Numbered from the stretch's first letter, positions 1 through 30,683 are shown. The stretch: DNA of 64,000 bases from Anaeramoeba ignava BMAN (GCA_028826165.1 JAPDFW010000092.1:186001-250000); one strand, 5' to 3'. Made by a program: numbers and translations. The notes: generated by a model from the sequence alone, not told the origin.

Positions 1-216
1 CTTGATTATCCATTTTTTGAAACAAGTTCAAAAGAAAATATTAATGTTAATGAAGCTTTTGATACTTTTTTTAAACAAGTTGGAACAAGAGCTGTTCAAA
101 CAAATGATCCAAATATTAAAAATCCAAATAAATATCCAAATCAAAATCAAAACCAAAATCAAAATCAAAATCAAAATTCAAATTCAAATTCAAATAAAAA
201 ATGTTTATGTTTTTGA
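1..216 (+). CDS. Rab1-like GTPase copy 0, last exon only (truncated by window edge), ends KKCLCF
   Basis: Frame 1 reads [20 protein letters not shown]...KKCLCF* (G5 box plus Cys motif); TGA at 214-216. Confidence 0.9.
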   Translation, partial: LDYPFFETSSKENINVNEAFDTFFKQVGTRAVQTNDPNIKNPNKYPNQNQNQNQNQNQNSNSNSNKKCLCF

Positions 217-330
217 ATTTAATTTTATATTTATTTCATCAATTCAAAATTATTTGAATAAATTTTAATCCAAAAATCAAATTTTTCAAAATTTTTCATT
301 TTTCATTTTTTATTTTTCAATTTTCAAAAA

Positions 331-1354
331 ATGAATCAAGATTATGATTATAGAATTAAAATACTTTTAGTTGGAGATTATTCAGTTGGGAAATCTAGTT
401 TAGTTCTTAGATATTTTGTATTTAAAAATTTATTTTTATCAAAAATATTATTAATAATAAAAATATAAAAATTGAATAAATAATTAAAAGGATAATACAT
501 TTACAGAATCATATGTATCTACAATTGGAGTTGATTTTGTAAGTTAAGTTAAGTTAAATTAAATATTAATTAATTTAATAAATTAATTTTTTTAATTTTT
601 TAATTTAAAATTTAATCCAAAAAAAAAGAAAATTAAAACAATGGAAATGAATGAAAAGATTTATAAGTTTCTTGTTGTAAAAATATTATTTTAAAACTTT
701 TTAAAACAAATTCTAATTTTATTCCAATTTCCAAAATTTTATTCCGATTTCTAAAAAATATTAAAAATTAAAATATAAAATATAAAATATAAAATATAAA
801 ATATAAAATATAATATAAAATATAAAGTGGGATGCATCAGGAGGTGAAAGATTTAGACAAATAACTTCATCTTATTATAGAGGAACACATGGAATTATGA
901 TTCTTTATGATGTTACAAATCAAGAATCATTTGATAATATTAAAAATTGGATTAAAGAAATTCAAAGATATGGAAATGATACTGTTAATATTATGTTAAT
1001 TGGAACAAAATCTGATTTAATTTCAAAAAAAGTTATTGATACAGAAACTGGAGAAGTAATTTATATTTTTATATTTTTATATTTTTATATTTTTATAAAT
1101 TCAATTCCAAATAAAAATAAAAATAAATCAAATAAAAGAAATTAGCAGAACAACTTGGTTATCCATTTTTTGAAACAAGTTCAAAAGAAAATATTAATGT
1201 TAATGAAGCTTTTGATACTTTTTTTAAACAAGTTGGAACAAGAGCTGTTCAAACAAATGATCCAAATATTAAAAATCCAGATAAATATCCAAATGAAAAT
1301 CAAAATCAAAATCAAAAAAATCAAAATTCAAAATCAAAATGTTTATGTTTTTGA
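331..1354 (+). CDS. Rab1-like GTPase copy 1 (exons 331-417, 491-538, 629-676, 828-1055, 1139-1354)
   Basis: Spliced reading gives GDYSVGKS / [11 protein letters not shown] / WDASGGE / YYRGTHG / GTKSD / ETSSK / CLCF*; four phase-0 GT-AG introns. Confidence 0.92.
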
Positions 1355-1466
1355 ATTTAATTTTATATTTATTTCATCAATTCAAAATTATTTGAATAAA
1401 TTTTAATTCAAAAATTCAAAAAAATTCAAAAATTCATTTTTTTTTTTTATTTTTCAATTTTCAAAA

Positions 1467-2387
1467 ATGAATAAAGATTATGATTTCCTTTATAAAATTG
1501 CTTTTGTTGGAGATTATGGAGTTGGGAAAACGAATTTAATTTATAAATTTGTTGTATTTTCTTTTTTTGAAATAATTTATAAACAAAAATTCAATAAAAA
1601 CAAAACGTTTTTTTATTATTTTGAATAAAAAAAATAAAGGAAGGAACATTTTCTGAAACACCAATTTTAAGAATTCCAAATGATTTTGTGAAATTTCCTT
1701 TTAAAAATAATAATTAATTCAATTCAATTTAATTTAATTTAATTTCTCTTCTTTTTTCTAATTAATTAAACAAAAAATATTTTCAAATTTAGCCTTATAA
1801 AAAACTTGAATTTAATGAAAAAATTATTAAACTTCAATTTGTAAATTAATTTTCTTTTTAAATTAATTAATTAAAATTGATTTAAAATTGATTTAAATAA
1901 TTCAAAGTGGGATCCATCAGGAGGTGAAAGATTTAGAGCATTAACAAAATATTTTTATAGAGGAGCACATGGAATTATTCTTCTTTATGATGTTACAAAT
2001 CAAGATTCATTTGATAATCTTAAATATTGGATTAAAAAAATACAAGAATATGCACCTGAAAATATTAATATTATGTTAATTGGAACAAAATCAGATTTAA
2101 TTTCTCAAAAAGTTATTGATACAGAAACTGGAGAAGTAATTTTATATAATTTTATATATTTAATTCCAAAAAATTTATTCCCAAAAAAATATAAACAAAT
2201 CAAATAAAAGAAATTTGCAGAACAACTTGGATATTCATTTTTTGAAACAAGTTCAAAAGAAAATATTAATATTAATGAAGTTTTCCAAAAAATGATTGAA
2301 GAAATCGAAAAAAGAGATAAACAAAATCAAAATACAAATACAAACCAAAATACAAATCAAATCCAAAATCAAGAAAAATGTTTTTGA
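1467..2387 (+). CDS. Rab1-like GTPase copy 2, highly divergent
   Basis: GDYGVGKT / ETPILRIPNDF (switch-I Thr lost) / WDPSGGE / GTKSD / ends EKCF*; same 5-exon layout. Confidence 0.88.
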
Positions 2388-2493
2388 ATTTAATTTTTAT
2401 ATTTATTTCATCAACTCTAAAATTATTTGAATAAAATTTAATTCAAAATCCAAAAAATCATTTCCATTTTTTATTTGTTTTTTCTTTTCAAAA

Positions 2494-3424
2494 ATGAATC
2501 AAGATTGTTACAGTATTAAAATACTTTTAATTGGTGATTATCAAGTTGGAAAGTCTCGTTTAATTTTGAGATATTTTGTATTAAAAAATTTATTTCAAAA
2601 AACGTTTTTTTATCAAAATTATTATTAATAATAAAAATATCCAAATTGAATAAATAATTAAAAGGATGATACATTTACAGAGCCATATTTTGCCACAATT
2701 AGAATTGAATTTGTAAGTTAAGTTAAGTTAAATTAAATATTAATTAATTTAATAAGTTTATTAACTAATTTTTTTAATTTTTAAATTTTAAATTTAATCC
2801 AAAAAAAAAGAAAATTAAAACAATAGAAATAAATGGAAAGATTTTTCAGTTTTTTGTTGTAAAAATAGTTTTTAAAACTTTTTAAAACAAATTCCTAATT
2901 TTATTCTGATTTACAAAAAATAATAAAATAATAAATATAAAATATATAAAAAGTGGGATCCATCAGGAGCTGAAAGATTTAGAGCAGTAGCAAAATCTTA
3001 TTATAGAGGAACACATGGAATTATTCTTCTTTATGATGTTACAAATCAAGATTCATTTAATAATCTTAAATATTGGATGAAAGAAATTCAAGAATATGCA
3101 CCTGATAATGTGAATATGATTTTAATTGGAACAAAATCTGATTTAATTTCTCAAAAAGTTATTGATACAGAAACTGGAGAAGTAATTTTATAATTTTTAA
3201 TTTTTATATTTTATAAATTCAAAAAATATTTATTCCAAATAAATCAAATCAAATAAAAGAAATTTGCAGAACAACTTGGAATTTCATTTTTTGAAACAAG
3301 TTCAAAAGAAAATATTAATGTTAATGAAGCTTTTGATACTTTTTTTAAACAAGTTGGAACAAGAGCTGTTCAAACAAATGATCCAAATATTAAAAATTCA
3401 AATGATACAAATTGTTGTTTTTGA
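2494..3424 (+). CDS. Rab1-like GTPase copy 3
   Basis: GDYQVGKS / ATIRIEF / WDPSGAE / GTKSD / NCCF*. Confidence 0.9.
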
Positions 3425-3516
3425 ATTTAATTAATTAATCAATAAAATTATTTGAATAAAATTCAAAATTCAAAAAATCATTTTCTTTCATTTTTTATTT
3501 TTGTTCAATTTCAAAA

Positions 3517-4503
3517 ATGAATCAAGATCATGATTATAGAATTAAAATACTTTTAATTGGTGATTATGGAGTTGGAAAATCTAGTTTCACTGAGAGATAT
3601 TTTGTATTTAAAAATTTTATTTTAATCAAAAAACGTTTTTTTATCAAAAATATTATTAATAATAAAAATATAAAAATTGAATAAATAATTAAAAGGATGA
3701 AAGATTTGAAGAACCATATATTTCTACAATTGGAATTGATTTTGTAAATTAAATATAAATATTAATATTATTAATTAATTTAATAAGTTTATTAACTAAT
3801 TTTAAATTTTAAATTTAATCCAAAAAAAAAGAAAGTTAAAACAATAGAAATAAATGGAAAGATCTTTAAATTTCTTGTTGTAAAAATAGTTTTTAAAACT
3901 TTTTAAAACAAATTCCTAATTTTATTCCAATTTCCAAAAAATAATAAATATAAAATATAAAATATAAAATATATAAAAAGTGGGATCCATCAGGAAGTGA
4001 AAGATATAGACAAATAACAAGATCTTATTATAGAGGAACACATGGAATTATGATTCTTTATGATGTTACAAATCAAGATTCATTTGATAATATTAAAAAT
4101 TGGATGAAGCAAATACAAGAATATGCACCTGATACTGTTAATATTATGTTAATTGGAACAAAATCTGATTTAATTTCAAAAAAAGTTATTGATACAGAAA
4201 CTGGAGAAGTAATTTTATAATTTTTATAAATTCAATTAAATTCAAATTATTTAATCCAAATAAATCAAAAATAATTCAAATAAGAAATTTGCAGAACAAC
4301 TTGGTTATCCATTTTTTGAAACAAGTTCAAAAGAAAATATAAATGTTAATGAAGCTTTTGAAACTTTTTTTAAACAAGTTGGAACAAGAGCTGTTCAAAC
4401 AAATGCTCCAAATATTAAAAATCCAAATAAATATCCAAATGAATATCAAAATCAAATTCAAATTCAAAATGAAATTTCAAATGATACAAATTGTTGTTTT
4501 TGA
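3517..4503 (+). CDS. Rab1-like GTPase copy 4
   Basis: GDYGVGKS / STIGIDF / WDPSGSE / GTKSD / NCCF*. Confidence 0.9.
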
Positions 4504-4609
4504 ATTTATTTAATTAATCAATAAAATTATTTGAATAAAATTCAAAAATCCAAAAATCCAAAAATCCAAAAATTCATTTTTTTTCATTTTTCATTTTCAA
4601 TTTTCAAAA

Positions 4610-5809
4610 ATGAATAAAGATTATGATTATAGAATTAAAATTATTTTAATTGGTGATTATGGAGTTGGAAAAACTAGTTTACTTTTGAGATATTTTGTAT
4701 TTAAAAATTTATATTTTTATCAAAATTAATAATAATAAAAATATAAAAATTGAATAAATAATTAAAAGGATGATACATTTACAGAATCATATATCACCAC
4801 AATCGGATTTGATTTTGTAATTTAAATTAAATATTAATAATATTAATTATTGCAATAAATTTATTAACTAATTTTTCAATTTTAAATTTAATCCAAAAAA
4901 AAGAAAATGAAAACAATAGAAATGGATAAAAAGATTTATAAGTTTCATGTTGTAAAAATATTTTTTAAAACTTTTTAAAACAAATTCTAATTTTATTCCG
5001 ATTTCCAAAAATTTATTCCGATTTCTAAAAAAATATAAAATATAAAATATATTATAAAATATATAAAAAGTGGGATACATCATCATCAGAAAGATTTAGA
5101 CAAATAACTTCATCTTATTATAGAGGAACACATGGAATTATGATTCTTTATGATGTTACAAGTCAAGATTCATTTGATAATCTTAAAACTTGGATGCAAG
5201 ATATTCAAAGATATGCACCTGATACTGTTAATATTATGTTAATTGGAACAAAATCTGATTTGATTTCTCAAAAAGTTATTGATACAGAAACTGGAGAAGT
5301 AATTTTATATTTTATAATTTTTATATTTTTCAATTCAAAAAATATTTAATTCCAAATAAAAATATAAAATAAATTAAATAAAAGAAATTTGCAGAACAAC
5401 TTGATTATCCATTTTTTGAAACAAGTTCAAAAGAAAATATAAATGTTAATGATGCTTTTGAAACTTTTTTTAAACAAGTTGGAACAAGAATTATTCAAAC
5501 AAATAATCAAAATCAAAATCAAAATCAAAATCAAAATCAAATTCAAATTCAAAATCAAAATCAAAATCAAAATCAAAATCAAAATCAAAATCAAAATCAA
5601 AATCAAAATCAAAATCAAAATCAAAATAAAAATCAAAATCAAAATCAAAAAATCAAAATAATCAAAATCAAAATCAAATTCAAAATCAAATTCAAAATCA
5701 AAATCAAAATCAAAATCAAAATCAAAATCAAAATCAAAATCAAAATCAAAATCAAATTCAAAATCAAAATCAGAATCAAAATCAAAATCAAAAATGTTTA
5801 TGTTTTTGA
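4610..5809 (+). CDS. Rab1-like GTPase copy 5 with long poly-NQ tail (1-nt frameshift in an A-run near 5650)
   Basis: GDYGVGKT / TTIGFDF / WDTSSSE / GTKSD; CLCF* at 5795-5809 is reached only if one A is added in the run at about 5647-5652. Confidence 0.8.
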
Positions 5810-5877
5810 ATTTATTTATATTTAAATAAAATTTATTTGGATTATTATTTTCATTTTTTTCTTTTTTTCATTTCAAA

Positions 5878-6849
5878 ATGAATTCAAATTATGATTATAG
5901 AATTAATATTGTTTTAATTGGAGATTCTGGAGTTGGAAAAACTAGTTTACTTATTAGATATTTTGTATTTAAAAATTTAATTTTATCAAAAAACGTTTTT
6001 TTATCAAAAATATTATTAATAATAAAAATATCAAAATTGAATAAATAATTAAAAGGACGGTACATTTACAGAACCATATAATACTACAATTGGAGTTGAA
6101 TTTGTATGTTATATTAAATATTAATAATATTAATTAATTTAATAAATTTATTAACTAATTTTCTAATTTTTTGGATTTTGAATTTCAATTTAAATTTTAA
6201 TCCAAAAAAAAGAAAATTAAAACAATAGAAATGAATGAAAAGATTTATAAATTTCTTGTTGTAAAAAATAGTTTTATTTCCAAAAAAAAAGAAACTTAAA
6301 TCAAAATGTTAAAAATATATTAATAATAAATATAAAAAGTGGGATACAGCAGGAGCTGAAAGATTTAGAGCAGTAACAAGATCTTATTATAGAGGAGCAC
6401 ATGGAATTATGGTTATTTATGATGTTACAAATCAAGATTCATTTGATAATCTTAAAATTTGGATTCAACAAATTCAAGCATTTGCAAATGATAATGTTAA
6501 TATTATGTTAATTGGAGCAAAATCAGATTTAGTTTCAAAAAAAGTTATTGATACAGAAACTGGAGAAGTAATTATATAATTTATAATTTTTATATTTTAT
6601 AATTTAAATCAAATTATTTAATTCCAAAAAAATCAAAAATAAATTAAATTAAAGAAATTTGCAGAACAACTTGGAATTCCATTTTTTGAAACAAGTTCAA
6701 AAGAAAATATAAATGTTAATGAAGCTTTTGAAACTTTTTTTAAACAAGTTGGAACAAGAGCTGTTCAAACAAATGATCCAAATATTAAAAATCAAAATAA
6801 AAATCAAAATCAAAATCAAAATCAAAATAAAACAAATTGTTGTTTTTGA
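5878..6849 (+). CDS. Rab1-like GTPase copy 6
   Basis: GDSGVGKT / TTIGVEF / WDTAGAE / YYRGAHG / GAKSD / NCCF*. Confidence 0.92.
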
Positions 6850-6906: not shown

Positions 6907-8042
6907 ATGAATCAAAATTATGATTATAGAATTAATATTATTTTAATTGGAGATTATGGAGTTGGAAAAACTAGTTTAGTTGAGCGATATTTTGTATTTG
7001 AATTTTATTTTAAATTAACTATAAAATTAAAAAACGTTTTTTTGAAATGATTTTGAAAATTATTAATAATAATCAAAATATTAAAATTGAATAAATAATT
7101 AAAAGGATGATATATTTGGAGAACCGTATATTTTAACAATTGGAATTGATTTTGTAAGTTAAATTAAGTTAAATCAATTTTAATTAATTTAATAAATTTA
7201 TTAACTAATTTTTTAATTTTTTGGATTTTGAATTTTAATTTTAAATTTTATCCAAAAAAAAGAAAATTAAAAAAATGGAAATAAATGAAAAGATTTATGA
7301 ATTTCTTGTTGTAAAAATAGTTTTATTTCCAAAAAAAAAGAAAATTAAATCAAAATGTTAAAAATATATTAATATAAATTATTAAAAGTGGGATACAGCA
7401 GGAGCTGAAAGATTTAGAAGAATAACCTCATCTTATTATCGATTAGCACATGGAATTATGCTTGTTTATGATGTTACAAATCAAGAATCATTTGATAATC
7501 TTAAATATTGGATGAAGGATATTCAAAGATATTCAAATGATAATGTTAATATTATGTTAATTGGAACAAAATCTGATTTAGTTTTCAAAAAAGTTATTGA
7601 TACAGAAAGTGGAGAAGTAATTTTATTATTTTATTATTTTTCTATTTTTCAACTCAATTCAAATTATTTAATTCCAAAAAATCAAAAATAAATTAAATAA
7701 AAGAAATTTGCAGAACAACTTGGAATTCCATTTTTTGAAACAAGTTCAAAAGAAAATATTAATGTTAATGATGCTTTTGAAACTTTTTTTAAACAAGTTG
7801 GAACAAGAATTATTCAAACAAATGATCCAAATAATCAAAATCAAAATCAAAATCAAAATCAAAATCAAAATCAAAATCAAAATCAAAATCAAAATCAAAA
7901 TAATCAAAATCAAAATAATCAAAATCAAAATCAAAATAATCAAAATCAAAATCAAAATCAAAATCAAAATAATCAAAATAATCAAAATAATCAAAATCAA
8001 AATCAAAATAAAAATCAAAATAAAAAATGTTTATGTTTTTAA
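6907..8042 (+). CDS. Rab1-like GTPase copy 7 with poly-NQ tail
   Basis: GDYGVGKT / LTIGIDF / WDTAGAE / YYRLAHG / GTKSD / CLCF*. Confidence 0.92.
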
Positions 8043-8125: not shown

Positions 8126-9102
8126 ATGAATCAAGATTATGATTATAAAATTAATATATTTTTAATTGGAGATGCTGGAGCTGGGAAATCTAGTTTAATT
8201 CTGAGATATTTTGTAATAAAAAATTTTATTATTATTCAATATATTTTTCAAAATTATTATTAATAATAAAAATATCAAAATTGAATAAATAATTAAAAGG
8301 ATAATAATTTTATAGAATCATATATTGCCACAATTGGAGTTGATTTTGTATGTTATATTAAATATTAATAATATTAATTAATTTATTAAATTTATTAACT
8401 AATTTTCCAATTTTTTGGATTTTGAATTTTAATTTTAAATTTTAATCAAAAAAAAGAAAATTAAAACAACAGAAATGAATGAAAAGATTTATGAATTTCT
8501 TGTTGTAAAAATAGTTTTATTTCCAAAAAAAAAGAAAATTAAATCAAAATGTTAAAAATATATTAATAATAAATATAAAAAGTGGGATATAATAAAAGGA
8601 AATCAAATATTCACAACAATAACAAGATCTTATCTTCATTTAGCACATGGAATTATGCTTGTTTATGATGTTACAGATCAAGAATCATTTGATAATCTTA
8701 AAACTTGGATGAAGGATATTCAAAGATATGCACCTGATAATATTAATATTATGTTAATTGGAACAAAATCTGATTTAGTTTCTCAAAAAGTTATTGATAC
8801 AGAAAGTGGAGAAGTAATTTTATTATTTTATTATTTTTATATTTTTCAATTCAATTCAAATTATTTAATTCCAAAAAAAATATAAATAAATCAAATTAAA
8901 GAAATTTGCAGAACAACTTGGAATTCCATTTTTTGAAACAAGTTCAAAAGAAAATATTAATGTTTATGAAGCTTTTGAAACTTTTTTTAAACAAGTTGGA
9001 ACAAGAATTATTCAAACAAATGATCCAAATAATCAAAATAATCAAAATAATCAAAATCAAAATCAAAATAAAAATCAAAATAAAAAATGTTTATGTTTTT
9101 AA
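8126..9102 (+). CDS. Rab1-like GTPase copy 8
   Basis: GDAGAGKS / ATIGVDF / WDIIKGNQ (one-codon insertion in G3) / YLHLAHG / GTKSD / CLCF*. Confidence 0.9.
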
Positions 9103-9185: not shown

Positions 9186-10193
9186 ATGAATCAAGATTAT
9201 GATTATAAAATTAATATTGTTTTAATTGGAGATTCTGGAGCTGGAAAAACTAGTTTAATTCTTAGATATTTTGTAATAAAAAATTTTATAATTATTCAAT
9301 ATATTTTTCAAAATTATTAATAATAAAAATATCAAAATTGAATAAATAATTAAAAGGATAATAATTTTTCGGAATCATATATTGCCACAATTGGAGTTGA
9401 TTTTGTAAGTTAAATTAAGTTAAATCAATTTTAATTAATTTAATAAGTTTATTAACTAATTTTCCAATTTTTTGGATTTTGAATTTTAATTTTAAATTTT
9501 AATCAAAAAAAAGAAAATGAAAACAATAGAAATGAATGAAAAGATTTATAAATTTCTTGTTGTAAAAACAATTTCTAAAATAGTTTTATTTCCAAAAAAA
9601 AAGAAACTTAAATCAAAATGTTAAAAATATATTATATAAAAAATATAAAAAGTGGGATACAGCAGGAAGTCAAAGAATTACTATACTAACTTCATCTCAT
9701 TTTCGATTAGCACATGGAATTATGCTTCTTTATGATGTTACAGATCAAGAATCATTTGATAATCTTAAATATTGGATGAAGGATATTCAAAAATATTCAA
9801 ATGATAATGTAAATATTATGTTAATTGGAGCAAAATCTGATTTAGTTTCTCAAAAAGTTATTGATACAGAAAGTGGAGAAGTAATTTTATTATTTTATTA
9901 TTTTTCTATTTTTCAATTCAATTCAAAATATTTAATTCCAAAAAAAATATAAATAAATTAAATTAAAGAAATTTGCAGAACAACTTGGAATTCCATTTTT
10001 TGAAACAAGTTCAAAAGAAAATATTAATGTTTTTGAAGCTTTTGAAACTTTTTTTAAACAAGTTGGAACAAGAATTATTCAAACAAATGATCCAAATAAT
10101 CAAAATCAAAATCAAAATCAAAATCAAAATCAAAATCAAAATCAAATTCAAAATCAAAATCAAAATCAAAATAAAAAATGTTTATGTTTTTAA
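9186..10193 (+). CDS. Rab1-like GTPase copy 9
   Basis: GDSGAGKT / ATIGVDF / WDTAGSQ / HFRLAHG / GAKSD / CLCF*. Confidence 0.9.
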
Positions 10194-10289
10194 ATTCAAA
10201 ATTAATTTTGGAAAAATTTATTTTCATTTTTCTTTTCTTTTCTTTTCTTGATATTATATTAAAATGGAAAAACAAACTTAAAAATGTTT

Positions 10290-11249
10290 ATGTTTTTAAA
10301 TTCAAAAATAAGTTTAATTATTCGATATTTTTATTTTAAAATTTTTCATTTTTCAATTCAAAAACAAAAAACATTTTTCAAATAAAATTCAAAACCAAAA
10401 ATTTTGGAAAACGTTTTTCTTTGAAAATTTTGATAAAAATTTTTTATTGATTCTTATATTTCATCAATTGGAGTTGATTTTTAAATAAATATTAAATTAA
10501 TTCAATTAATGAAAGGATAATAATTTTTAAAGAAAGATCTTTTACAATTTGAGTTGATTTTTGTTGTTGAATTTAATTAGAGAATAATTTAAAATTTGAA
10601 TAAATTTAAAAGGTTTTCCAATTTTTGGATTTTTGAATTAAAAATTTTAAAAAATATTCAAAATATTCAAAAAAATTAAAAATATCCAAAAATATTCAAA
10701 AATATTCAAAAATATTCAAAAATATTTTATTTCCAAAAAATATTAAAAAAATATTCAAAAATATTCAAAAATATTCAAAAATATAAAAAGTGGGATTTTC
10801 ATTCAAATCAAATATATAGACCTGTAACAATTATTATTATTATAAATCAGCACATGGAATTATGCTTCTTTATGATGTTACAGATCAAGAATCATTTGAT
10901 AATCTTAAATATTGGATTAAAGAAATCCAAGAAAAAGCACCAGATGATGTAAATGTTATTATAATTGGAACAAAATCTGATTTAGTTTCCAAAAAAATTA
11001 TTGATACAGAAACTGGAAAAGTAAATTAAATTAATCCATAAATATAATTAATTCATAATTATAAATAATTTTATAAATTTAAAAAAAAAGAATTTTGCAG
11101 AACAACTTGGTTATCCATTTTTTGAAATAAGTTCAAAAGAAAATATTAATATTAATGAAGCTTTTGAAACAATAATTAAACAATCTTCCAAAAAATTAAA
11201 ACAAAACCCAATCGAAACAAAACAAGAAAAGAAATGTTTATTTATTTGA
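10290..11249 (+). pseudogene. Rab1-like copy 10: 5' exons scrambled, exon 4 frameshifted (pseudogene or mis-assembled)
   Basis: Fragments SLIIRYF and DSYISSIGVDF; exon 4 from 10791 reads WDFHSNQIYRPV then shifts frame; last exon intact, ends KKCLFI*. Confidence 0.6.
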
Positions 11250-16938: not shown

Positions 16939-18176
16939 ATGGAAATTCAAAAAGATTATGATTATAAAATCAATATTCTTTTAGTTGGAGATTATAGAGT
17001 TGGGAAATCAAGTTTAAGTCTTCGTTATTTTGTATTTTAATTATTATTTTAATTTATCAATAAAAAAATGAAAAAATGAAAAAATTTATAATTAAAATAA
17101 TTCAATAAAAAAATATAAAAACTGAATACATTTTTAAAAGGAAGATAAATTTCAAGATTCTTATATTTCAACTATTGGAGTTGATTTTGTAAGTAAATTA
17201 TAATTTAAAACAATTAATTTATTAACCAAACAATTTAAAAATTATAAAAAACAAAATATAAATCAAAAAATCAAAACAAAAGAAACTTAAAACAATTGAA
17301 ATGAATGAAAAGATTTTCAAATTTCTTGTTGTAAATAATTTAAAAGAAAATAAATGGAAAAAATAATATTCAAATTAAAAGAAAAATATTCAAATCAAAA
17401 AATCAAAAAATAAATGAAATTATTTTTTTCCAAAATTTTATAAAAAGTGGGATTATCAACCAGCTGAAAGATTTTGGGAAATGCCAAGTAATTATTATAG
17501 AGGAGCACATGGAATTATGATTCTTTATGATACTACAAATCAACAATCATTTGATAATATTAAAAAATGGATAAAACAAATTCAAAATTATGCAAAAAAT
17601 GATGTAAATATTATTTTAATTGGAACAAAAATTGATTTAGTTTCTCAAAAAGTAATTGATACAGAAACTGGAAAAGTATTTTTTAAATTGAAAGAAATCC
17701 AAATATTAAATAAATATTAAATAAATATTAAATAAATATCAAATAAATATTAAATATTTAAATAAATATTAAATAAATATTTAAATAAATATTAAATAAA
17801 TATTAAATAAATATTAAATAAATATTAAATAAATATTAAATAAATATTAAATAAATATTAAATAAATATTAAATAAAAATTCAATAAATATTAAATAAAT
17901 ATTTAAATAAATATTAAATAAATATTAAATAAATATTTAAATAAATATTAAATAAATATTAAATAATAAAAATAGAAATTAGCAGAACAACTTGGTTATT
18001 CATTTTTTGAAACAAGTTCAAAAGAAAATATTAATGTTAATGAAGCTTTTGAAACTTTTTTTAAACAAACTGGAACAAGAGTTGTTCAAACAAATTCAAA
18101 TCAAAATTCAAACACAATTTCAAATTCCATTTCAATTTCAAATCAAAAAGATAAAAAAGAATGTTTATTATTTTGA
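16939..18176 (+). CDS. Rab1-like GTPase copy 15
   Basis: GDYRVGKS / STIGVDF / WDYQPAERFWEMPSNYYRG / GTKID / KKECLLF*; intron 4 holds (TAAATATTAAA)n. Confidence 0.9.
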
Positions 18177-18264: not shown

Positions 18265-19515
18265 ATGAATTATAAAAAAGATTATGATTATATTTTCAAA
18301 ATTTTTTTAGTTGGTAATTATGGAGTTGGAAAAACAAGTTTATTAACTAGATATACTGTATTTGATTTATTCAAAATTTTTTTAAAATCAAATTTTCTAT
18401 ATTAAAAATTTTTTCATTTAAATTATAACTCTTTCCAAAATTAATTTTAAAGGATGGAAACTTTACAAATTCGTATAACTCAACAATTGGATTTGATTTT
18501 GTAAATGAATATTAATTTAATTAAATTTTCAAAATTCAAAAAATTAAAAAAAATTAATTCAAAAAATTAATTCAAAAAAAAATTAAATTAAAAACAATTT
18601 GGATTAAAAATTAAATTAGAAAATTAAAACATTTGAATTAAATGGAAAAATTTTCAAACTTCAAATTGTAAAATTTTTATATCAAAAAAATCAAAAAATC
18701 AAAATCAAAATTAAAAATCAAAATCAAAATCAAAATCAAAATCAAAATCAAAATCAAAATCAAAATCAAAATCAAAATCAAAATGAAAAAATCAAAATTA
18801 ATAAAAGTGGGACCCAACAGGAGCTGAAAGATTTTTAACAATAACAAGATCTTATTATAGAGGAACAAGTGGAGTGATTCTCTTTTATGATGTTACAGAT
18901 CAACAATCATTTAATGATCTTAAAGATTGGATAAAAGAAATTCAAGATAAAGCAGATGATAATGTAAATATTATGTTAATTGGAACAAAATCGGATTTAG
19001 TTTCTCAAAAAGTAATTGATACAGAAACTGGAAAAGTATTTTTGAAATTGAAAGAAATTCAAATATTCAATAAATATTAAATAAATAATAAATAAATATT
19101 TCAATAAATATTTCAATAAAAATTCAATAAATATTAAATAAATATCAAATAGATATTAAATAAATATTTCAATAAATATTAAATAAATATTTCAATAAAT
19201 ATTAAATAAATATTTAATAGATATTAAATAAATATTCAATAAATATTAAATAAATATTAAATAAATATTTAAATAGATATTAAATAAATATCAAATAAAT
19301 ATTAAATAAATATTAAATAAAAATAAAAGAATTTTGCAGAACAACTTGGTTATTCATTTTTTGAAACAAGTTCAAAAGAAAATATTAATGTTGATGAAGC
19401 TTTTGAATCATTAACAAATCAAATTTATCAAAGAGTAAAACAAATTCCTCAAGAAAAGTCAAATCAAATCAAAAAAGAAAAAGATGATGAAAAAAAAGGA
19501 TGTTTATTATTTTGA
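18265..19515 (+). CDS. Rab1-like GTPase copy 16
   Basis: GNYGVGKT / STIGFDF / WDPTGAE / GTKSD / KKGCLLF*. Confidence 0.9.
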
Positions 19516-19642: not shown

Positions 19643-20681
<1,039 letters not shown>

Positions 20682-20791: not shown

Positions 20792-21590
20792 ATGAATTAT
20801 CAAACAGATTATGATTATCTTTTTAAAGAGCTTTTTATTGGTGATACTGGAGTTGGAAAATCATGGTTTTATGCTTAGATATACTCTATTCAAAATTTTT
20901 CAAATCAAATTTTCCAAAACAATTTTAATTTAAATTATAACTTTTTCCAAAATTATTTTAAAGGATGAACTTATACATGTTATTTTATTTCAACAATTGG
21001 AATTGATTTTGTAAATGAATATTAAATTAATTCAATTTTCAAAATTTGGAAAAATTTTTAACTAAAAATTAAATTAAAAATTAAATTAAAAACAATTTGA
21101 TTAAAAACAATTTGAATTAAAAATTAAATTAGAAAATTAAATAATTTGATTTAAAATAAAAAATTGAAATTTATATTAAAATTTTAAATAAAAAAATCAA
21201 AAGAACAATCAAAATCATTTTTGAAAAATCAAAAAAAAATAAAAATGAAAAATCTTTTGAATCAAAATCAAATCAAAAATCAAAAAATAAAAACAAAAAT
21301 CAAAATCAAAATCAAAATCAAAATCAAAAATAAAAATCAAAAATTAAATTGAAGAAAAAGGATGATCCATTATTTTGAAATTGAAAGATTTACAATAACA
21401 AAGGTTCTCCTTTTTAATCATTTTTCATTTTTCATTTACAAATCATTTTTCATTTTTAAAATTTAAATAAATTAAATTAAATTACCAAGAAAATTATCAG
21501 ATGATGCAAATATTATTTTAATTGGAACAAAATCGGATTTAGTTTCTCAAAAGAGTTAATTGATACAGATATGAAAAGTATTTTTTTAAA
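20792..21590 (+). pseudogene. Rab1-like copy 18: degraded duplicate of copy 17
   Basis: [27 protein letters not shown] and IGTKSD remnants, with indels and lost splice sites. Confidence 0.5.
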
Positions 21591-21599
21591 TTGAAAAAA

Positions 21600-22943
21600 T
21601 CCAAATTTTCAAATAAATATTTCAATAAATTTTATATTTCAATAACTTTTCCCAATATTATTTAAAAGGATGGAACTTTTAAATAAATATTAATTAAATG
21701 AATATTAAATTAATTCAATTTTCAAAATTTAAAAAATTTATTCAAAAAAAATTAAATTAAAAACAATTTGAAAATAATTTGGATTAAAAATTGAATTAGA
21801 AAATCAAAAGATTTGAATTAAATGAAAAACAATTCAAACTTCAAATTGTAAAATTTTTAAATCAAAAAATCAAAAAAATCAAAATCAAAATCAAAATCAA
21901 AATCAAAATCAAAATCAAAATCAAAATCAAAAATAAAAATCAAAATCAAAATCAAAATCAAAATCAAAATTAAAATCAAAATCAAAAATTAAATTAATAA
22001 AAGTGGGATCCATCAGGAAGTGAAAGATTTAGAACAATAACAAGAGGTTATTATAGAGGAGCACATGGAATTATTCTTATTTATGATGTTACAAATCAAA
22101 ATTCATTTGATAATCTTAAAACTTGGATTAAAGAAATTCAAGAAAAAGCATCAGATGATGTGAATGTTATGCTAATTGGAACAAAATCGGATTTAGTTTC
22201 TCAAAGAGTAATTGATACAGAAACTGGAAAAGTATTTTTTAAATTGAAAGAAATCCAAATATTTCAATAAATATTTCAATAAATATTTCAATAAATATCA
22301 AATAAATATTTAATAAATATTAAATAAATATTCCAAATAAATATTTAAATAAATATTAAATAAATATTTCAATAAATATTCAAATAAATATTAAATAAAT
22401 ATCAAATAAATATTAAATAAATATTGAATAAATATTTAAATAGATATTAAATAAATATTTAAATAAATATTAAATAAATATTTCAAATAAATATCAAATA
22501 AATATTAAAATAAATATTAAATAAATATCAAATAAATATTAAATAAATATTAAATAAATATTAAATAAATATTAAATAAATATTAAATAAATATTAAATA
22601 AATATTAAATAAATATTAAATAAATATTAAATAAATATTAAACAAATATTTAAATAAATATTAAATAAATATTAAATAAATATTCAATAAATATTAAATA
22701 AATATTAAATAAATATTTAAATAAATATTAAATAAATATTAAATAAAAATAAAATAGAAATTAGCAGAACAACTTGGTTATTCATTTTTTGAAACAAGTT
22801 CAAAAGAAAATATTAATATTGATGAAGCTTTTGAATCATTAACAAATCAAATTTATCAAAGAATAAAACAAATTCCTCAACAAAAGCCAATTCCAACTCC
22901 AATTAAAAAAGTTGAAGAAAAAAAAGGATGTTTATTATTTTGA
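21600..22943 (+). pseudogene. Rab1-like copy 19: exons 3-5 intact, exons 1-2 missing or garbled
   Basis: KLQI / WDPSGSERFRTITRGYYRGAHG / GTKSD / ETSSK / KKGCLLF*; only an exon-2 stub near 21668. Confidence 0.6.
22255..22745 (+). repeat. (TAAATATTAAA)n 11-mer in intron 4 (also at about 17700-17965, 19065-19320, 23905-24200, 27920-28570, 29890-30160)
   Basis: Direct inspection of the sequence. Confidence 0.93.
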
Positions 22944-23145: not shown

Positions 23146-24420
23146 ATGGAAATTCAAAAAGATTATGATTATGTCATTAAAATTCTTTTAGTTGGAGATC
23201 ATGGAGTTGGGAAATCAAGTTTAAGTCTTCGTTATTTTGTATTTTAATTATTAATTTAATTTATCAATAAAAAAATGAAAAAATGAAAAAATTTATAATT
23301 AAAATAATTCAATAAAAAAATATAAAAATTGAATACATTTTTAAAAGGAAGATAAATTTCAAGATTCTTATATTTCAACTATTGGAGTTGATTTTGTAAG
23401 TAAATTATAATTTAAAACAATTAATTTATTAACCAAACAATTTAAAAATTATAAAAAACAAAATATAAATTAAAAAATCAAAACAAAAGAAACTTAAAAC
23501 AATTGAAATGAATGAAAAGATTTTCAAATTTCTTGTTGTAAATAATTTAAAAGAAAATAAATGGAAAAAATAATATTCAAATTAAAAGAAAAATATTCAA
23601 ATCAAAAAATCAAAAAATAAATGAAATTATTTTTTTCCAAAATTTTATAAAAAGTGGGATTATCAACCAACTGAAAGATTTAGGCCAATTCCAAGTAGTT
23701 ATTATAGAGGAGCACATGGAATTATGATTCTTTATGATACTACAAATCAACAATCATTTGATAATATTAAAAAATGGATAAAACAAATTCAAGATTATGC
23801 AAAAAATGATGTTAATATTATTTTAATTGGAACAAAAATAGATTTAGTTTCTCAAAAAGTAATTGATACAGAAACTGGAGAAGTATTTTTTAAATTGAAA
23901 GAAATCCAAATATTAAATAAATATTAAATAAATATTAAATAAATATTAAATAAATATTTAAATAAATATTAAATAAATATCAAATAAATATTAAATAAAT
24001 ATTTAAATAAATATTAAATAAATATTAAATAAATATTAAATAAATATTAAATAAATATTAAATAAATATTAAATAAATATTTAAATAAATATTCCAAATA
24101 AATATTCCAAATAAATATTAAAATAAATATTAAATAAATATTCAAATAAATATCAAATAAATATTAAATGAATATCAAATAAATATTAAATAAATATTAA
24201 ATAAAATGAAATTAAAGAACAAATAAATTATTCAAATAAAACAATAAAGTTAAATTAAAATAAAATAGAAATTAGCAGAATAACTTGTTATTCATTTTTG
24301 AATCATTAAAAAATCAAATTTATCAAAAGACAAAAACAATTTCAAACAAATTCAAATCAAAATTCAAAATCAAATCAAAATTCAAATCAAAAAGATAAAA
24401 AAGGATGTTTATTATTTTAA
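23146..24420 (+). pseudogene. Rab1-like copy 20 (paralogue of copy 15); last exon has a stop and lacks the G5 box
   Basis: GDHGVGKS / STIGVDF / WDYQPTE intact; exon 5 reads KLAE* and the [12 protein letters not shown] segment is deleted. Confidence 0.6.
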
Positions 24421-24564: not shown

Positions 24565-25729
24565 ATGAATCCAATTTTTCAAAATTATGATTATCTTTTT
24601 AAAATTATCTTACTTAGTGAAAGAGGAATGGGAAAATCATGTTTATTACTTAGATATACTGTATTTTATTTATTCAAAATTTTTTTAAATCAAATTTTCC
24701 AAAACAATTTTTAATTTAATTTATAAAATTTTCCAATATTATTTTAAAGGATGGAACTTATTCAGATTCTTATATTTCAACAATTGGAGTTGATTTTGTA
24801 AATGAATATTAAATTAATTCAATTTTCAAAATTAATTCAAAAAAAAAAAACAAATCAAAAAATTAATTCAAAAAATTAATTCAAAAAATTAATTAAAAAA
24901 AAAATTAAATTAAAAACAATTTGGATTAAAAATTGAATTAGAAAATCAAAGGATTTGAATTAAATGGAAAAAAATTCAAACTTCAAATTGTAAAATTTTA
25001 TATCAAAAAAATCAAAAAATAAAAATCAAAATCAAAACCAAAATCAAAATTAAAAATCAAAAATCAAAAATCAAAATTAAAAATCAAAATCAAAATCAAA
25101 ATCAAAATCAAAATCAAAATCAAAATCAAAATCAAAATTAAAAAAATCAAAATCAAAAATCAAAATCAAAATCAAAATCAAAATTAAATTTAATAAAAGT
25201 GGGAACCTGCAGGAAGTGAAAGATTTTTAACACTAACAAGATCTTATTATAGAGGAGCACATGGAATTATAATTCTTTATGATACTACAAATCAAGAATC
25301 ATTTGATGATCTTAAAAAATGGATTAAAGAAATTCAAGAAAAAGGGCCAGATGATGCAAATATTATGATAATGGGAACAAAAATTGATTTAGTTTCTCAA
25401 AAAGTAATTGATACAGAAACTGGAAAAGTATTTTTTAAATTGAAAGAAATCCAAATATTCAATAAATATTAAATAAATATTCAATAAATATTAAATAAAT
25501 ATTAAATAAATATTTAATTTAAATTTTCAACAAAATAAAAAAGAATTTTGCAGAACAACTTGGTTATTCATTTTTTGAAACAAGTTCAAAAGAAAATATT
25601 AATATTGATGAAGCTTTTGAATTATTAACAAATCAAATTTATCAAAGAGTAAAACAAATTCCTCAAGAAAAACCAAAATCAAATCAAAATTCAAATCAAA
25701 AAGATAAAAAAGGATGTTTATTATTTTAA
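24565..25729 (+). CDS. Rab1-like GTPase copy 21
   Basis: P-loop SERGMGKS / STIGVDF / WEPAGSE / GTKID / KKGCLLF*. Confidence 0.9.
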
Positions 25730-25853: not shown

Positions 25854-26993
25854 ATGATACAAGATGGAGATTATCGAATTGATATCCTTTTAATTGGTGA
25901 TCGAAAAGTTGGGAAATCAAATTTAAGGCTTAGATATTGTGTATTTTATTATTTAAAAATAATATTCAATAAAAATTATATCAAAATTGATTGTTTTTAA
26001 AAGGAAGATACATTTACAGATGAAAATTTGGCAATAATTGGAGATGATCTTGTAAATAAATTGGATTATAAATAAAATTATAAATAAAATTATAAATAAA
26101 ATTATAAATAAAATTATAAATAAAATTATAAATAAAATTATAAATAAAATTATAAATAAAATTATAAATTAAATTATAAATAAAATTATAAATAAAATTA
26201 TAAATTAAATTATAAATAAAATTAAATTATTAATTAAATTATAAATTAAATTATAAATTAAATTATAAATTAAATTATTAATAAAATTATAAATTAAATT
26301 ATAAATAAAATTATAAATTAAATTCAGAAAATGAAAGTAATTGAAAAGGCTGGAAAGGTTTCAAAGATTCTTATCGTAAAAACTTTAAAAGAAAAAGAAA
26401 GAAAAAATCCAAAAAGAATTTTGATTTAAAAAATAAATTTTTTGAAATTAAAAAAAAGTGGGATCCAACACCAAATGAAAGATATAGACAATTAATATTA
26501 CTTTATTATAAAAAAGTTCATGGAATTATAATTGTTTATGATGTTACAAATCAAGAATCATTTGATAATATTAAAAAATGGGTGAAAGAAATTCAAAATA
26601 ATTCAAATGATAATGTAAATGTTATTCTAATTGGAACAAAAATTGATTTAGATTCTCAAAAAGTTATTGATACAGAAACTGGAAAAGTATTTTTTATATC
26701 AAAATTAAAAAATATTAAAATAAATATTAAATAAATATTAAATAAATATTAAATAAATATTAAATAAATATTTCAATAAATATCCAAAATATATTAAATA
26801 AAAATAGAAATTAGCAGAACAACTTGGTTATTCATTTTTTGAAACAAGTTCAAAAGAAAATATTAATATTAATGAAGCTTTTGAAACAATGATTATTCAA
26901 ATTGAAAAAAGAAATCATGAAAAATTAAAAAAAAATTCCAATTCCAATTCCAAAAATAATCAAAATGAAAAAAAAGATTGTTTATTAATGTGA
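25854..26993 (+). CDS. Rab1-like GTPase copy 22, highly divergent
   Basis: GDRKVGKS / ENLAIIGDDL / WDPTPNE / YYKKVHG / GTKID / KKDCLLM*. Confidence 0.87.
26068..26322 (+). repeat. 12-bp AAATWAAATTAT repeat in intron 2 of copy 22
   Basis: Direct inspection of the sequence. Confidence 0.93.
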
Positions 26994-27133
26994 AAGTTAG
27001 GTTTTTAAATTTGAATTGAAATTTGAATTGAAATCCATTTTTTTTTAATTATTGATTTATATTTTTGGAAAATGAAAAAATTTCAAAAAATATTTTTTTC
27101 ATTTTTTTTCGATTTCTTTTCTTAAATAATCAA

Positions 27134-28747
27134 ATGGATTATAAACAAGAATATGATTATCTTTTTAAAATTATTTTAGTTGGTGATTCTGGAGCTGGAA
27201 AATCTTGCTTATTAATTAGATATTCTGTATTTTATTAATAAAAATTGAATTAAATTAAATTTTTAGAAATGTAAAAAGTTTTTTCTCATTAATAAAAACA
27301 TTTTTAATATTAATTTTAAAGGATGGTAAATTTTCAGATTCTTATGTTTCAACAATTGGAGTGGATTTTGTAAATGAATATTAATTTAATTCAATTTTAA
27401 AAATTTAAAATTAAAAATTAAAAATTAAAAATCAAAATTTAAAAAAGAGGATTAAACCAATTGAATTAAATGGAAAAATTTTCAAGCTCCAAATTGTAAA
27501 ACTTTAAAATAAAATTTAGATTTAAAATCTAATTGAAATTCAAAATTAAAATCAAAATCAAAATCAAAATAAAAATTAAAATCAAAATCAAAATCAAAAT
27601 CAAAATCAAAAATCAAAATTAAAATCAAAATCAAAATCAAAATTAAAATCAAAATCAAAAATTAAATTAATAAAAGTGGGATTTTGCAGGAACTGAAAGA
27701 TTTTCAATGTATACAAGAAATTATTTTAGAGGAGCACATGGAATTATGATTCTTTATGATATTGCAAATCAAAACTCATTTGATAATCTTAAATTTTGGA
27801 TACAAGAAATTCAAGAAAAAGCAGGAGATGAAGTAAATATTATTCTAATTGGAACAAAATCAGATTTAGTTTCAAAAAGAGTTATTGATACAGAAACTGG
27901 AAAGGTATTTTTTTACATACAATAAATATTAAATAAATATTAAAATAAATATTAAATAAATATTAAATAAATATTAAATAAATATTAAAATAAATATTAA
28001 AATAAATATTCAATAAATATTAAATAAATATTAAATATTAAATAAATATTAAATAAATATTCAATAAATATTAAATAAATATTAAATAAATATTAAATAA
28101 ATATTCAATAAATATTAAATAAATATTCAATAAATAAATATTAAATAAATATTAAATTAAATATTAAATAAATATTTCAATAAATATTAAATAAATATTA
28201 AATAAATATTAAATAAATATTAAATAAATATTCAATAAATATTAAATAAATATTTCAAATAAATATTTCAAATAAATATTTTAAATAAATATTAAAAATA
28301 AATATTAAATAAATATTCAATAAATATCTAATAGAAATTAAATAAATATTAAATAAATATTAAAATAAATATTAAAATAAATATTCAATAAATATTAAAT
28401 AAATATTAAATATTAAATAAATATTAAATAAATATTTCAATAAATATTAAATAAATATTAAATTAAATATTAAATAAATATTTCAATAAATATTAAATAA
28501 ATATTAAATAAATATTAAATAAATATTTCAATAAATATTCCAAATAAATATTCCAAATAAATATTAAAATAAAATAAAATAGAAATTAGCAGAACAACTT
28601 GGCTATTCATTTTTTGAAACAAGTTCAAAAGAAAATATTAATATTAATGAAGCTTTTGAATCATTAACAAATCAAATTTATCAAAGAGTTAAACAAATTC
28701 CTCAAGAAAAACCAAAAAATGAAAAAAAAGATTGTTTATTAATGTGA
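27134..28747 (+). CDS. Rab1-like GTPase copy 23
   Basis: YDYLFK / GDSGAGKSC / STIGVDF / [19 protein letters not shown] / GTKSD / KKDCLLM*. Confidence 0.92.
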
Positions 28748-28896
28748 AAGTTAGGTTTTTAAATTTGAATTGAAATTTGAATTGAAATCCATTTTTTTTA
28801 ATTGTTGATTTATATTTTTGGAAAATGAAAAAATTTCAAAAAAACGTTTTCTTATTTTTTCATTTTTTTTTTCGATTTCTTTTCTTAAATAATCAA

Positions 28897-30683
28897 ATGG
28901 ATTATAAACAAGAATATGATTATCTTTTTAAAATTGTTTTAGTTGGTGATACTGGAGTTGGAAAAACAAGTTTATTATCTAGATATACTGTATTTTATTA
29001 ATAAAAAATTAAATTAAATTAAATTAAATTTTTAGAAATGTAAAAAGTTTTTTCTCATCAATAAAAACATTTTTAATATTAATTTTAAAGGATGGTAAAT
29101 TTTCAGATTCTTATGTTTCAACAATTGGAGTGGATTTTGTAAATGAATATTAATTTAAATTAGTTTAAATTAAATTAAATTAAATTAAATTAAAAAATTA
29201 AAAAATTAAAAACAAAGAGAACAAAAACAATTGGATTAGATGGAAAAAATATGAAACTTCAAATTGTAAAACTTTAAAATAAAATTTAGATTTAAAATCA
29301 AAATCAAAATCAAAATCAAAATCAAAATTAAAAATCAAAATCAAAATCAAAATTAAAATCAAAATCAAAATCAAAATCAAAATCAAAATCAAATTGAAAA
29401 TCAAAATCAAAATCAAAATTAAAATCAAAATTAAAATCAAAATCAAAATCAAAATCAAAATCAAAATCAAAATCAAAATCAAAATCAAATTCAAATTGAA
29501 AATCAAAATCAAAATCAAAATCAAAATCAAATTCAAATTGAAAATCAAAATCAAAATCAAAATCAAAATCAAAATTAAAATCAAAATCAAAACCAAAATT
29601 TAAATCAAAATAAAAATCAAAATCAAAAATTAAATTAATAAAAGTGGGATTTAGCAGGAAGTGAAAGGTTTATAAATGTAACAAGAGTTTATTATAGAGG
29701 AGCAAGTGGAGTTATTCTTCTTTATGATATTGCAAATCAAAACTCATTTGATAATCTTAAATTTTGGATACAAGAAATTCAAGAAAAAGCAGAAGATGAA
29801 GTAAATATTATTCTAGTTGGAACAAAATCAGATTTAGTTTCAAAAAGAGTTATTGATACAGAAACTGGAAAGGTATTTTTTTACATACAATAAATATTAA
29901 ATAAATATTTCAATAAATATTAAATAAATATTGAAATAAATATTAAATAAATATTTCAATAAATATTAAATAAATATCAAATAAATATTAAATAAATATT
30001 CCAAATAAATATTAAATAAATATTTCAAATAAATATTAAATAAATATCAAATATTCCAAATAAATATTTCAAATAAATATTCCAAATAAATATTCCAAAT
30101 AAATATTTCAAATAAATATTAAATAAATATTCCAAATAAATATTTAATAAATAAAATATTAAATAAATAGAATTCGAATAAATTTTAAATAAGTTCAAAA
30201 GAAAATATTAATAAATATTAAGCTTTTAAATATTCCAAATCAAATTTATTAAATTAAATAAAACAAATATTTCAAAAAATAAATATTGAAAAACAAATTT
30301 TTCAATAAATTTAAAAGAAAATATCAAAAATAAAAATTAAATAAAAATTAAAACAAAAAAAAAAACAAATTAAATATTAAAAATTCCTCTTTTCAAATAA
30401 ATATTAAATAAATATTGAATAAATATTCAAAATTAAAAAATTCAATAAATATTAAAGGAAAAAGAATAAAATAAAAATTAAAAATAAATAAAATCAATTT
30501 AGACTTTTTATCTTAAGTTATTCATTTTTGAAACAAGTTCAAAAAAGAAAATATTAATATTGATGAAGCTTTTAATCATTAACAAAAATAATTTATCAAA
30601 AAGTAAAACAATTTCCTCGGGAGGAAAACCAATTCCAATTCAATATAATTATTTTTGAAAAACAAGTTTGTTTATTAATTTAA
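28897..30683 (+). CDS. Rab1-like GTPase copy 24: exons 1-4 intact, last exon garbled
   Basis: GDTGVGKT / STIGVDF / WDLAGSE / GTKSD; exon-5 remnants at 30170-30683 end in CLLI*. Confidence 0.65.

Follow-up and report, generated by a model that had tools for sequence, protein, structure and literature searches.

What can a Rab GTPase become once the catalytic glutamine of its switch II is gone? The question is raised by a locus of the symbiont-bearing amoeba Anaeramoeba ignava BMAN, where head-to-tail genes for Rab1-derived GTPases, none of them with this residue, run through the first 30,680 positions of the window analysed here, a stretch of 64,000 nucleotides (C82:186001-250000; GCA_028826165.1 JAPDFW010000092.1:186001-250000) with a G+C content of 13-31%. 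The explanation that we favour, with some reserve, is a tandem family specific to the A. ignava lineage, made up of atypical Rab1 paralogues that are probably resistant to GTPase-activating proteins (GAPs) and shaped by duplication, decay and short-tract gene conversion. Few protein segments of eukaryotes are as invariant as Rab1 switch II, and an array of ~24 paralogues without its glutamine is a natural experiment on how a Rab can work outside the canonical cycle controlled by GAPs.

The array begins ~3 kb upstream of the window and lies entirely on the + strand. Genes were modelled by splice rules: in the 5' part an ATG, GK[ST] plus seven residues followed by GT, and two 16-codon exons between AG and GT; in the 3' part a 76-codon exon bounded by W and TG[EK] and a terminal exon that opens with [KN][LF]AEQL and runs to the stop codon. 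Each intact copy consists of five exons separated by four GT-AG phase-0 introns, splice sites are canonical in all modelled exons of 23/23 modelled copies, and the models of g14, g15 and g22 are residue-for-residue identical to NCBI proteins P0274, P0273 and P0271, while the annotated fusion P0122 is built on the same exons as our g18 model. In total the family comprises 24 copies with an intact exon 4 (g00-g23), 20 of them full length, plus four decayed copies (psi1-psi4), i.e. ~28. The window holds 21 of the copies with an intact exon 4 (g03-g23); g02 reaches into it only by exon 5, and g01 and the divergent g00 sit a short distance before its left edge. A preliminary description of this DNA as a head-to-tail array of about 25 five-exon genes is thereby confirmed, and 19/19 of the switch II strings that it quoted were found on the + strand by regular-expression search over the three forward frames. 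Database searches used single exons or the database proteins P0152 and P0274, whereas the joined models served for alignment, tree and codon work; genome-wide comparisons were made within the 42.8-Mb A. ignava assembly.

As the preliminary description had stated, the catalytic glutamine is replaced by Gly, Ala, Ser, Thr or Asn in every copy; it is present in 0/24 array members compared with 98/98 Rab1 orthologues. Changes at other switch positions are confined to some copies. The Gly of the G3 motif DxxG is lost in g07, g14, g16, g19 and g21, the motif of g10 is disrupted by an insertion, the G3 Asp has become Glu in g20 and g00, and the switch I Thr is lost in g04 and g21. The P-loop pattern GxxxxGK[S/T] fits 22/23 modelled copies, the exception being g20 (SERGMGKS), with an invariant Lys and a nearly invariant second Gly. 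Of the 22 aligned copies, 15 have another residue instead of the P-loop Ser at the position of Ras Gly12 (Tyr in eight, Pro, Thr and Arg in two each and His in one), and g10, which was left out of this alignment, has Ala. All copies keep the KxD of G4, where the preceding Asn has given way to Thr (TKxD, 19 copies) or Ala (AKSD, four copies). TKxD is the normal state in Rho proteins. G5 reads SSK instead of SAK in g01-g23 and SAK in g00.

Across the copies there is almost no variation in GK[ST], the G3 Asp, Glu-Arg-Phe, YYRG, KxD or SSK, and since GK[ST] and KxD are retained in all of them there is no sequence reason to call any copy a nucleotide-free pseudoGTPase. Most copies also carry RabF motifs (IGVDF-like, K[FL][LQ][VI]W, YYRG and L[LI]YD[VI]T), RFRxIT being the variable one. 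Tails with two Cys residues (CLCF or CCF) occur in g01-g03, g05, g06 and g08-g11, CAAX-type tails (CLLF or CLLM) in g13-g18 and g20-g22, and single-Cys tails in g04 (KCF) and g12 (SCF). Two subfamilies can be distinguished: subfamily A (g01-g11), mostly with CLCF or CCF, and subfamily B, with a polybasic stretch followed by CLLF or CLLM.

The proposed descent from Rab1 is supported both by best matches in the PDB, which are to Rab1, and by four phase-0 introns that coincide with those of a canonical Rab1 gene. Exon 4 of g08 matched Rab1 structures with 105 bits (Rab8, 82; Rab35, 77), and even full-length g14, which has the oddest switch II, scored 218.6 bits against Rab1B and 198.7 against Ypt1, compared with 196.4 for Rab8A, its best non-Rab1 match. 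Elsewhere in the genome, the array is most similar to two canonical Rab1 genes, on C78 and C89, which share 63% identity with it in exon 4 and contain WDTAGQE, GNKSD, ETSAK and GGCC. The Rab1 gene on C78 (P0282) has five introns, four of which match the array introns exactly in position and phase (after RFA/RYF, VDF, LQI/FLV and TAK/TGE; all phase 0). The shared introns are informative because most other small-GTPase genes of A. ignava match the Pfam Ras model over its whole length with no break. A quick tree search that compared the array with 33 canonical Rab1 proteins only, and no non-Rab1 outgroup, placed all array members in a single clade on a long stem (SH-aLRT 100, length 1.64), where g15 lay nearest to the canonical proteins. 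For g23, the database matches that follow the array paralogues are Rab1 orthologues at 57-62% identity. Database searches with array proteins found no counterpart in A. flamelloides, where the best matches are canonical Rab1 proteins with the glutamine. Judged from the variable switch II, the separate long-stem clade and this missing counterpart, the family is Rab1-derived and not a Rab1 orthologue, and has so far been seen only in A. ignava. On the canonical side, an A. ignava Rab1 transcript in EukProt (P0278) differs from the C78 product P0282 in switch II (TRTYYRGCHG in P0278) and has a C89-type tail; this mismatch may reflect a third canonical Rab1 copy or an allele.

Where the copies vary was assessed by entropy over 22 aligned copies. 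Mean values were 0.98 bits in the P-loop exon, 1.05 in the switch I exon, 1.20 in the interswitch exon, 1.22 in switch II (taken as the first 20 codons of exon 4), 0.69 in the rest of exon 4 and 0.58 in the exon-5 core, while the same six regions of 98 Rab1 orthologues from across eukaryotes gave 0.09, 0.26, 0.41, 0.03, 0.66 and 1.01 bits, respectively. The variability profile of the array is the inverse of that of Rab1 orthologues. These values bear out the near-invariance of Rab1 switch II (WDTAGQE in 98/98 orthologues, 0.03 bits), the constancy of the C-terminal core in the array (19/56 and 15/34 sites invariant) and the general picture of a variable regulator-binding face on a conserved frame (0.98-1.22 versus 0.58-0.69 bits). 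The preliminary description had singled out switch II as hypervariable. This holds in that the segment shows the biggest gain over Rab1 orthologues (1.22 versus 0.03 bits), but it is not unique, as the P-loop, switch I and interswitch regions vary too.

Among all sites of the protein, variability peaks at switch II position 11, which corresponds to Thr72 of Rab1b; position 15 (Ser76) is also variable, and position 16 (Tyr77) is conserved. Such variation on a surface that bacterial effectors modify, with the Thr72 and Ser76 positions included, favors a reading in which the array is an immune-like repertoire of decoys or sensors, whose diversified switch surfaces would act as baits for bacterial effectors or toxins and would be reshuffled by conversion, pseudogene donors included. 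A raised ratio of nonsynonymous to synonymous substitution (omega) in switch II had been set as the test of this diversification. Naive Nei-Gojobori estimates did give an omega of 1.6-1.9 in switch II and ~1 elsewhere, including the conserved C-terminal half. These were set aside as inflated because third codon positions are 94% A/T, and models with F3x4 codon frequencies put every region below 1. Under such GY94-type models, 11 sister pairs gave omega values of 0.36, 0.20, 0.41, 0.65, 0.29 and 0.25 for the P-loop exon, switch I exon, interswitch exon, switch II, rest of exon 4 and exon-5 core, respectively; the values were significantly below 1 in 5/6 regions, and that of switch II alone did not differ from 1. 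Estimates on region-specific trees were 0.19, 0.20, 0.31, 0.45, 0.33 and 0.33 in the same order, all significantly below 1 (p = 0.006 for switch II). IQ-TREE supplied only the topologies, as its own GY+F3X4 run returned an unoptimized omega = kappa = 1.000, and codon likelihoods were computed with our own code. Both switch II estimates, 0.65 from pairs and 0.45 from trees, argue against diversifying selection.

A site-by-site codon model found no position with an omega significantly above 1 among the 20 of switch II. Nine of these positions had omega values of 0.66-1.7, the highest at position 11 (likelihood-ratio test statistic, LRT, 3.2), while W, D, E, R, F, T13, YY, R and G were strongly constrained, with an omega of 0.16 at the Tyr77 position. 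A clear excess was seen at one site only, exon-4 residue 50 in the alpha3-beta5 loop (omega 3.45, LRT 13.8). The tests draw on few sequences and short regions, use fixed branch proportions and are exposed to recombination; within these limits, they show that the fold is under purifying selection and that constraint is relaxed in part of switch II, and they do not show diversifying selection. A decoy repertoire is poorly served by this outcome: no switch II site is significantly positive, omega for the region is 0.45-0.65, the residue that DrrA targets, Tyr77, is among the conserved ones, and relaxed constraint is a simpler account of the same pattern.

Relaxation could also mean that most copies are non-functional duplicates, a young redundant array drifting towards pseudogenes in which the loss of the glutamine goes back to one defective founder. 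The 9/20 switch II sites near neutrality would fit this, as would the naive omega of ~1 in the C-terminal half, the four decayed and three truncated copies clustered at the right end, and the finding that 90%-identity clusters of four array proteins contain no transcriptome entry. We nevertheless regard it as very unlikely, given that omega corrected for A/T bias ranges from 0.19 to 0.45, significantly lower than 1 in all six regions, that 20 copies retain open frames and all splice sites, and that GK[ST], the G3 Asp, KxD, SSK and YYRG are nearly invariant.

Part of the switch II variation has moved between genes. Copies g13 (13124..14088) and g14 (14219..15200) are ~99% identical over exons and introns, yet 21 of 45 positions differ in a patch at the start of exon 4 (14725-14769) compared with ~1% elsewhere (Fisher p = 1e-22), and the differences extend into the last part of intron 3. 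Synonymous divergence between the two genes is 0.38 in the patch and 0.014 elsewhere, which indicates that the g14 patch was transferred and not mutated in place. Its closest relative is decayed copy psi1, with four differences in 36 nt as opposed to 14 to g13. Differences are clustered likewise in g22/g23 and g10/g11, and in 17/22 copies the nearest neighbor of the 48-nt patch is not that of the remaining exon 4, although many of these disagreements are weak because the patch is so short. Mosaic exon combinations also occur: g16 and g19 join a subfamily A exon 3 to subfamily B features. Short gene-conversion tracts carry switch II variants between copies, as in the psi1-like patch of g14. For cassette-like gene conversion of a functional loop, the array is a clear-cut case. 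A repertoire of decoys would also fit with birth-and-death dynamics, the presence of pseudogenes and conversion of this kind.

Biochemical consequences of losing the glutamine can be estimated from Rab1 Q67A, which alters basal hydrolysis less than 1.5-fold (Langemeyer et al., PMC3919270). The same substitution strongly lowers TBC1D20-stimulated hydrolysis and, ~tenfold, DrrA-driven nucleotide exchange, and barely affects TRAPP (PMC3919270). The notion that this residue supports intrinsic hydrolysis in Rab1, on which the preliminary description had relied, is therefore not upheld, and of its proposal of slow or non-hydrolysing proteins the universal glutamine loss stands, whereas ‘GAP-resistant’ is a better term than ‘non-hydrolysing’ since Q67A spares basal but not TBC1D20-stimulated hydrolysis. 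The genes evolve under purifying selection, and their products retain the nucleotide-binding residues (P-loop GK[ST], G3 Asp, xKxD and SSK) together with a prenylatable Cys tail. In the explanation that we favour, loss of the glutamine would mainly abolish hydrolysis stimulated by TBC-domain GAPs and leave activation by TRAPP intact. By analogy with Q67A, the products are probably GAP-resistant Rab-like membrane proteins with a long-lived GTP state. The surface that meets regulators and effectors (P-loop edge, switch I, interswitch and switch II) would have been freed from the canonical Rab1 partners and would then have drifted or diversified. Most plausibly, they would act in an expanded phagosome and symbiosome trafficking system.

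Several points weigh against this explanation. GAP resistance is extrapolated from point mutants of mammalian Rab1, and the symbiosome role is drawn from the context of the A. ignava genome paper (PMC11550330). With six copies lacking the DxxG Gly and two lacking the switch I Thr, some of the proteins may not switch at all, and Thr or Ala in place of Asn in xKxD may bear on nucleotide affinity. The lack of transcriptome entries among proteins clustered at 90% identity with four array members counts here as well. Finally, copies diverge less at synonymous sites in the 3' half (0.11-0.14) than in exons 1-3 (0.27-0.41), by a factor of two to three, so part of the ‘constant frame’ may reflect homogenizing conversion instead of selection.

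A related possibility is that the paralogues are compartment identity tags, each a constitutively active Rab with its own effector set, marking a particular sub-domain of the phagosomal or symbiosomal membranes. In line with this, the fold and the nucleotide-binding motifs are under purifying selection, the effector face differs between paralogues, and the one site with an omega significantly above 1 lies in the alpha3-beta5 loop, a Rab subfamily-specific region. Subfamily B, with its polybasic stretch and CLLF or CLLM, carries what we take to be a plasma-membrane-type signal, and the symbiosome reportedly stays connected to the plasma membrane. The genome paper describes hundreds of Rabs, 75-80% of them unclassifiable, with expanded Rab1, TBC-E and TBC-K families, and links these three expansions to control of the symbiont vacuole, or symbiosome (PMC11550330), which likewise favors identity tags. 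However, A. flamelloides has a symbiosome too and no protein closer to the array than canonical Rab1, and variable sites that are nearly neutral need no distinct effectors. We give identity tags a small but real chance.

The array genes are already annotated and are probably catalogued as unclassified Rabs (PMC11550330). The Rab OrthoFinder sheet in the supplement of that paper lists M0811_01738-01754 under UNCLASSIFIED, and an open reading frame of 756 residues at 54904-57171 of the window is 100% identical to the A. ignava ubiquitin-activating enzyme (E1) M0811_01763. From the order of locus tags, these 17 consecutive loci near the E1 gene are probably the array genes. Neither ‘switch II’ nor ‘catalytic glutamine’ is mentioned in the text and 15 supplementary files of the genome paper (PMC11550330).

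Glutamine loss is not confined to this locus. Because regular expressions for G3 either hit a DVTxxxSF motif or were too strict, open reading frames of other GTPase arrays in the genome were aligned to a Rab1 hidden Markov model. Two Ras-like arrays keep the glutamine in 7/22 members (C101, 161-179 kb) and 0/14 members (C60, 775-795 kb), and it is kept in 0/30 members of a Rho-like array on C61 (204-236 kb), 0/6 of another on C61 (108-114 kb), 1/6 of a Rho/Rac-like array on C60 (1204-1209 kb) and 0/2 of a Rho-like array on C115 (187-191 kb). Three further arrays (C137, C59 and C81) retain it. Overall, the residue is found in 28/104 array members as against 20/20 dispersed genes (the top-scoring Ras-family genes, which read xDTAGQE). 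An array on C57 was not counted, as it belongs to a different Rab family, has another intron position and reads GNKxD. Many tandem arrays of A. ignava, and not just the Rab1-derived one, combine glutamine loss with a variable G3. As Ras-like and Rho-like arrays show the same loss, the Rab1- and Legionella-specific account offered in the preliminary description is not needed, and the confinement of the loss to arrays, with dispersed genes unaffected, speaks for a mode of evolution that is general in this symbiont-bearing amoeba.

The same distribution could be read in favor of decoys, as could the ~tenfold drop in DrrA-driven exchange that glutamine loss causes in Rab1 (PMC3919270). A 2026 preprint reports that the related A. 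pumila hosts a Legionellales symbiont with a Dot/Icm system and predicted effectors with adenylyltransferase domains, although the literature consulted reports no Legionellales partner of A. ignava. Taking these points together with the codon tests, we consider a decoy or sensor role for the Rab1-derived array unlikely. The wider proposal, in which several Rab-, Ras- and Rho-like repertoires without the glutamine are diversified baits whose switch II variants arise by short-tract conversion, again with pseudogene donors, appears quite improbable. If true, they would amount to an innate-immunity decoy system of a protist, with a logic analogous to that of integrated decoys in plant NLRs. The array genes are candidates either for machinery that holds symbiont vacuoles arrested or for an effector-decoy system.

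The individual copies, all on the + strand, are numbered from left to right. Leftmost is g00 (C82:183000-183940), which looks intermediate, with FEIAGGE and GTKSD yet ETSAK, and has no Cys tail. Copy g02 (WDPTGSE, tail CLCF) has exons 1-4 at C82:185193-185911 and exon 5 at 1..216 of the window. It is followed by full-length copies g03 (331..1354; WDASGGE, P-loop GDYSVGKS, tail CLCF), g04 (1467..2387; WDPSGGE, ILRIPNDF without the switch I Thr, tail KCF), g05 (2494..3424; WDPSGAE, tail CCF) and g06 (3517..4503; WDPSGSE, tail CCF). In g07 (4610..5825; WDTSSSE, without the DxxG Gly) a frameshift in a glutamine/asparagine (QN) repeat has removed the Cys tail; the repeat passes into a KI-repeat frame, and an out-of-frame relic of CLCF (NVYVFEF) is still visible. 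This frameshift is either real or a repeat-length error of the assembly. Next come g08 (5878..6849; WDTAGAE, AKSD, tail CCF), g09 (6907..8042; WDTAGAE, tail CLCF), g10 (8126..9102; aberrant switch II WDIIKGNQ with a one-codon insertion) and g11 (9186..10193; WDTAGSQ, AKSD), all full length. Decayed copy psi1 (10250..11249) consists of relics of exons 1-3, a frameshifted exon 4 (WDFHSNQ) with the g14-like switch II patch, and a readable exon 5.

Beyond psi1 lie full-length g12 (11417..13039; WDLTGNE, tail SCF), full-length g13 (WDFAGTQ, AKSD, tail CLLF), g14 (WDFHSSE), which is nearly identical to g13 save for the 45-nt converted patch, and g15 (15332..16737; WDTAGAE, tail CLLF), the copy placed closest to canonical Rab1 in the tree. 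Copies g16 (16939..18176; WDYQPAE, without the DxxG Gly) and g17 (18265..19515; WDPTGAE) are full length. Apart from psi1, decayed and truncated copies are concentrated from here to the right end of the array. In psi2 (19643..20680) exons 1-2 are intact and exons 4 and 5 are broken by stops and frameshifts, and only relics of exons 1, 2 and 4 remain of psi3 (20792..21560). Copy g18 (21800..22943; WDPSGSE) has exons 3-5 and lacks exons 1 and 2 of its own, the public annotation giving it those of psi2. In g19 (23146..24417; WDYQPTE) exons 1-4 are intact, exon 5 lacks the G5 part and a tail relic lies at 24297-24417. Full-length g20 (24565..25729; WEPAGSE, P-loop SERGMGKS) and g21 (25854..26993; WDPTPNE, switch I Thr lost, tail CLLM), which is also full length and the most divergent copy, are followed by g22 (27134..28747; WDFAGTE, tail CLLM). 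Copy g23 (28897..29872; WDLAGSE) has exons 1-4 and a decayed exon 5 and is annotated as the truncated protein P0152. Two decayed exon-5 relics, psi4 (30183..30680), form the right end of the array.

Immediately downstream of the array (32555-34000, + strand) is a gene for a protein with TBC and TLDc domains of the TBC-K (TBC1D24/Skywalker) type. Compared with USP6NL, the Arg of its IxxDxxR motif is replaced by Phe and the Gln of YxQ by Val, so that both catalytic fingers are missing. Pfam was blank at 31136-31351 and gave no support for a PX domain there. Further along are a vWA-domain membrane protein (35164-36195, - strand), a very long QN-rich open reading frame with a candidate BTB domain by eye (40383-45005, - strand), a RhoGAP-domain exon (45253-45561, + strand) and a SPRY-domain protein (47870-49369, - strand). 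Long asparagine/glutamine repeats occur throughout the window.

Among known systems, canonical Rab1/Ypt1 (P0282; human Rab1A and Rab1B) is closest, with the best match, the four introns, IGVDF, KLQIW-like, YYRGA and LLYDVT motifs and the length of the G domain in common. Array members differ from it in lacking the switch II glutamine, in having the P-loop Ser mostly replaced, Thr or Ala in NKxD and SSK for SAK, and in ending in CLCF, CCF or CLLF/M instead of GGCC. The EhRabX Rabs of Entamoeba histolytica, which include the ‘pseudoRab’ EhRabX10 (PMC8514894), resemble the array as a protist-specific expansion with some members deviant in G motifs. They are set apart by belonging to a different lineage and by not being Rab1-derived tandem copies. 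Rnd1-3 and RhoH are atypical, GTPase-deficient small GTPases and singletons of the animal Rho family, and their substitutions are expected to keep the protein GTP-bound constitutively, with control exerted through its amount instead of through cycling. The array shares with them substitutions at the Gln61 equivalent (in all copies) and the Gly12 equivalent (in 15/22 aligned copies), together with retained nucleotide-binding motifs and a CAAX-type tail. A review covers this class of GTPases (PMC13236570). Unlike these proteins, the array is a Rab1-derived tandem family of ~24 members with variable switch regions and a predicted GTPase deficiency. Natural Rabs without the switch II glutamine also exist in Rab24 and Rab25, where Ser or Leu takes its place and GTPase activity is low; these, however, are single conserved orthologues with an otherwise conserved switch II, unlike the array described here.

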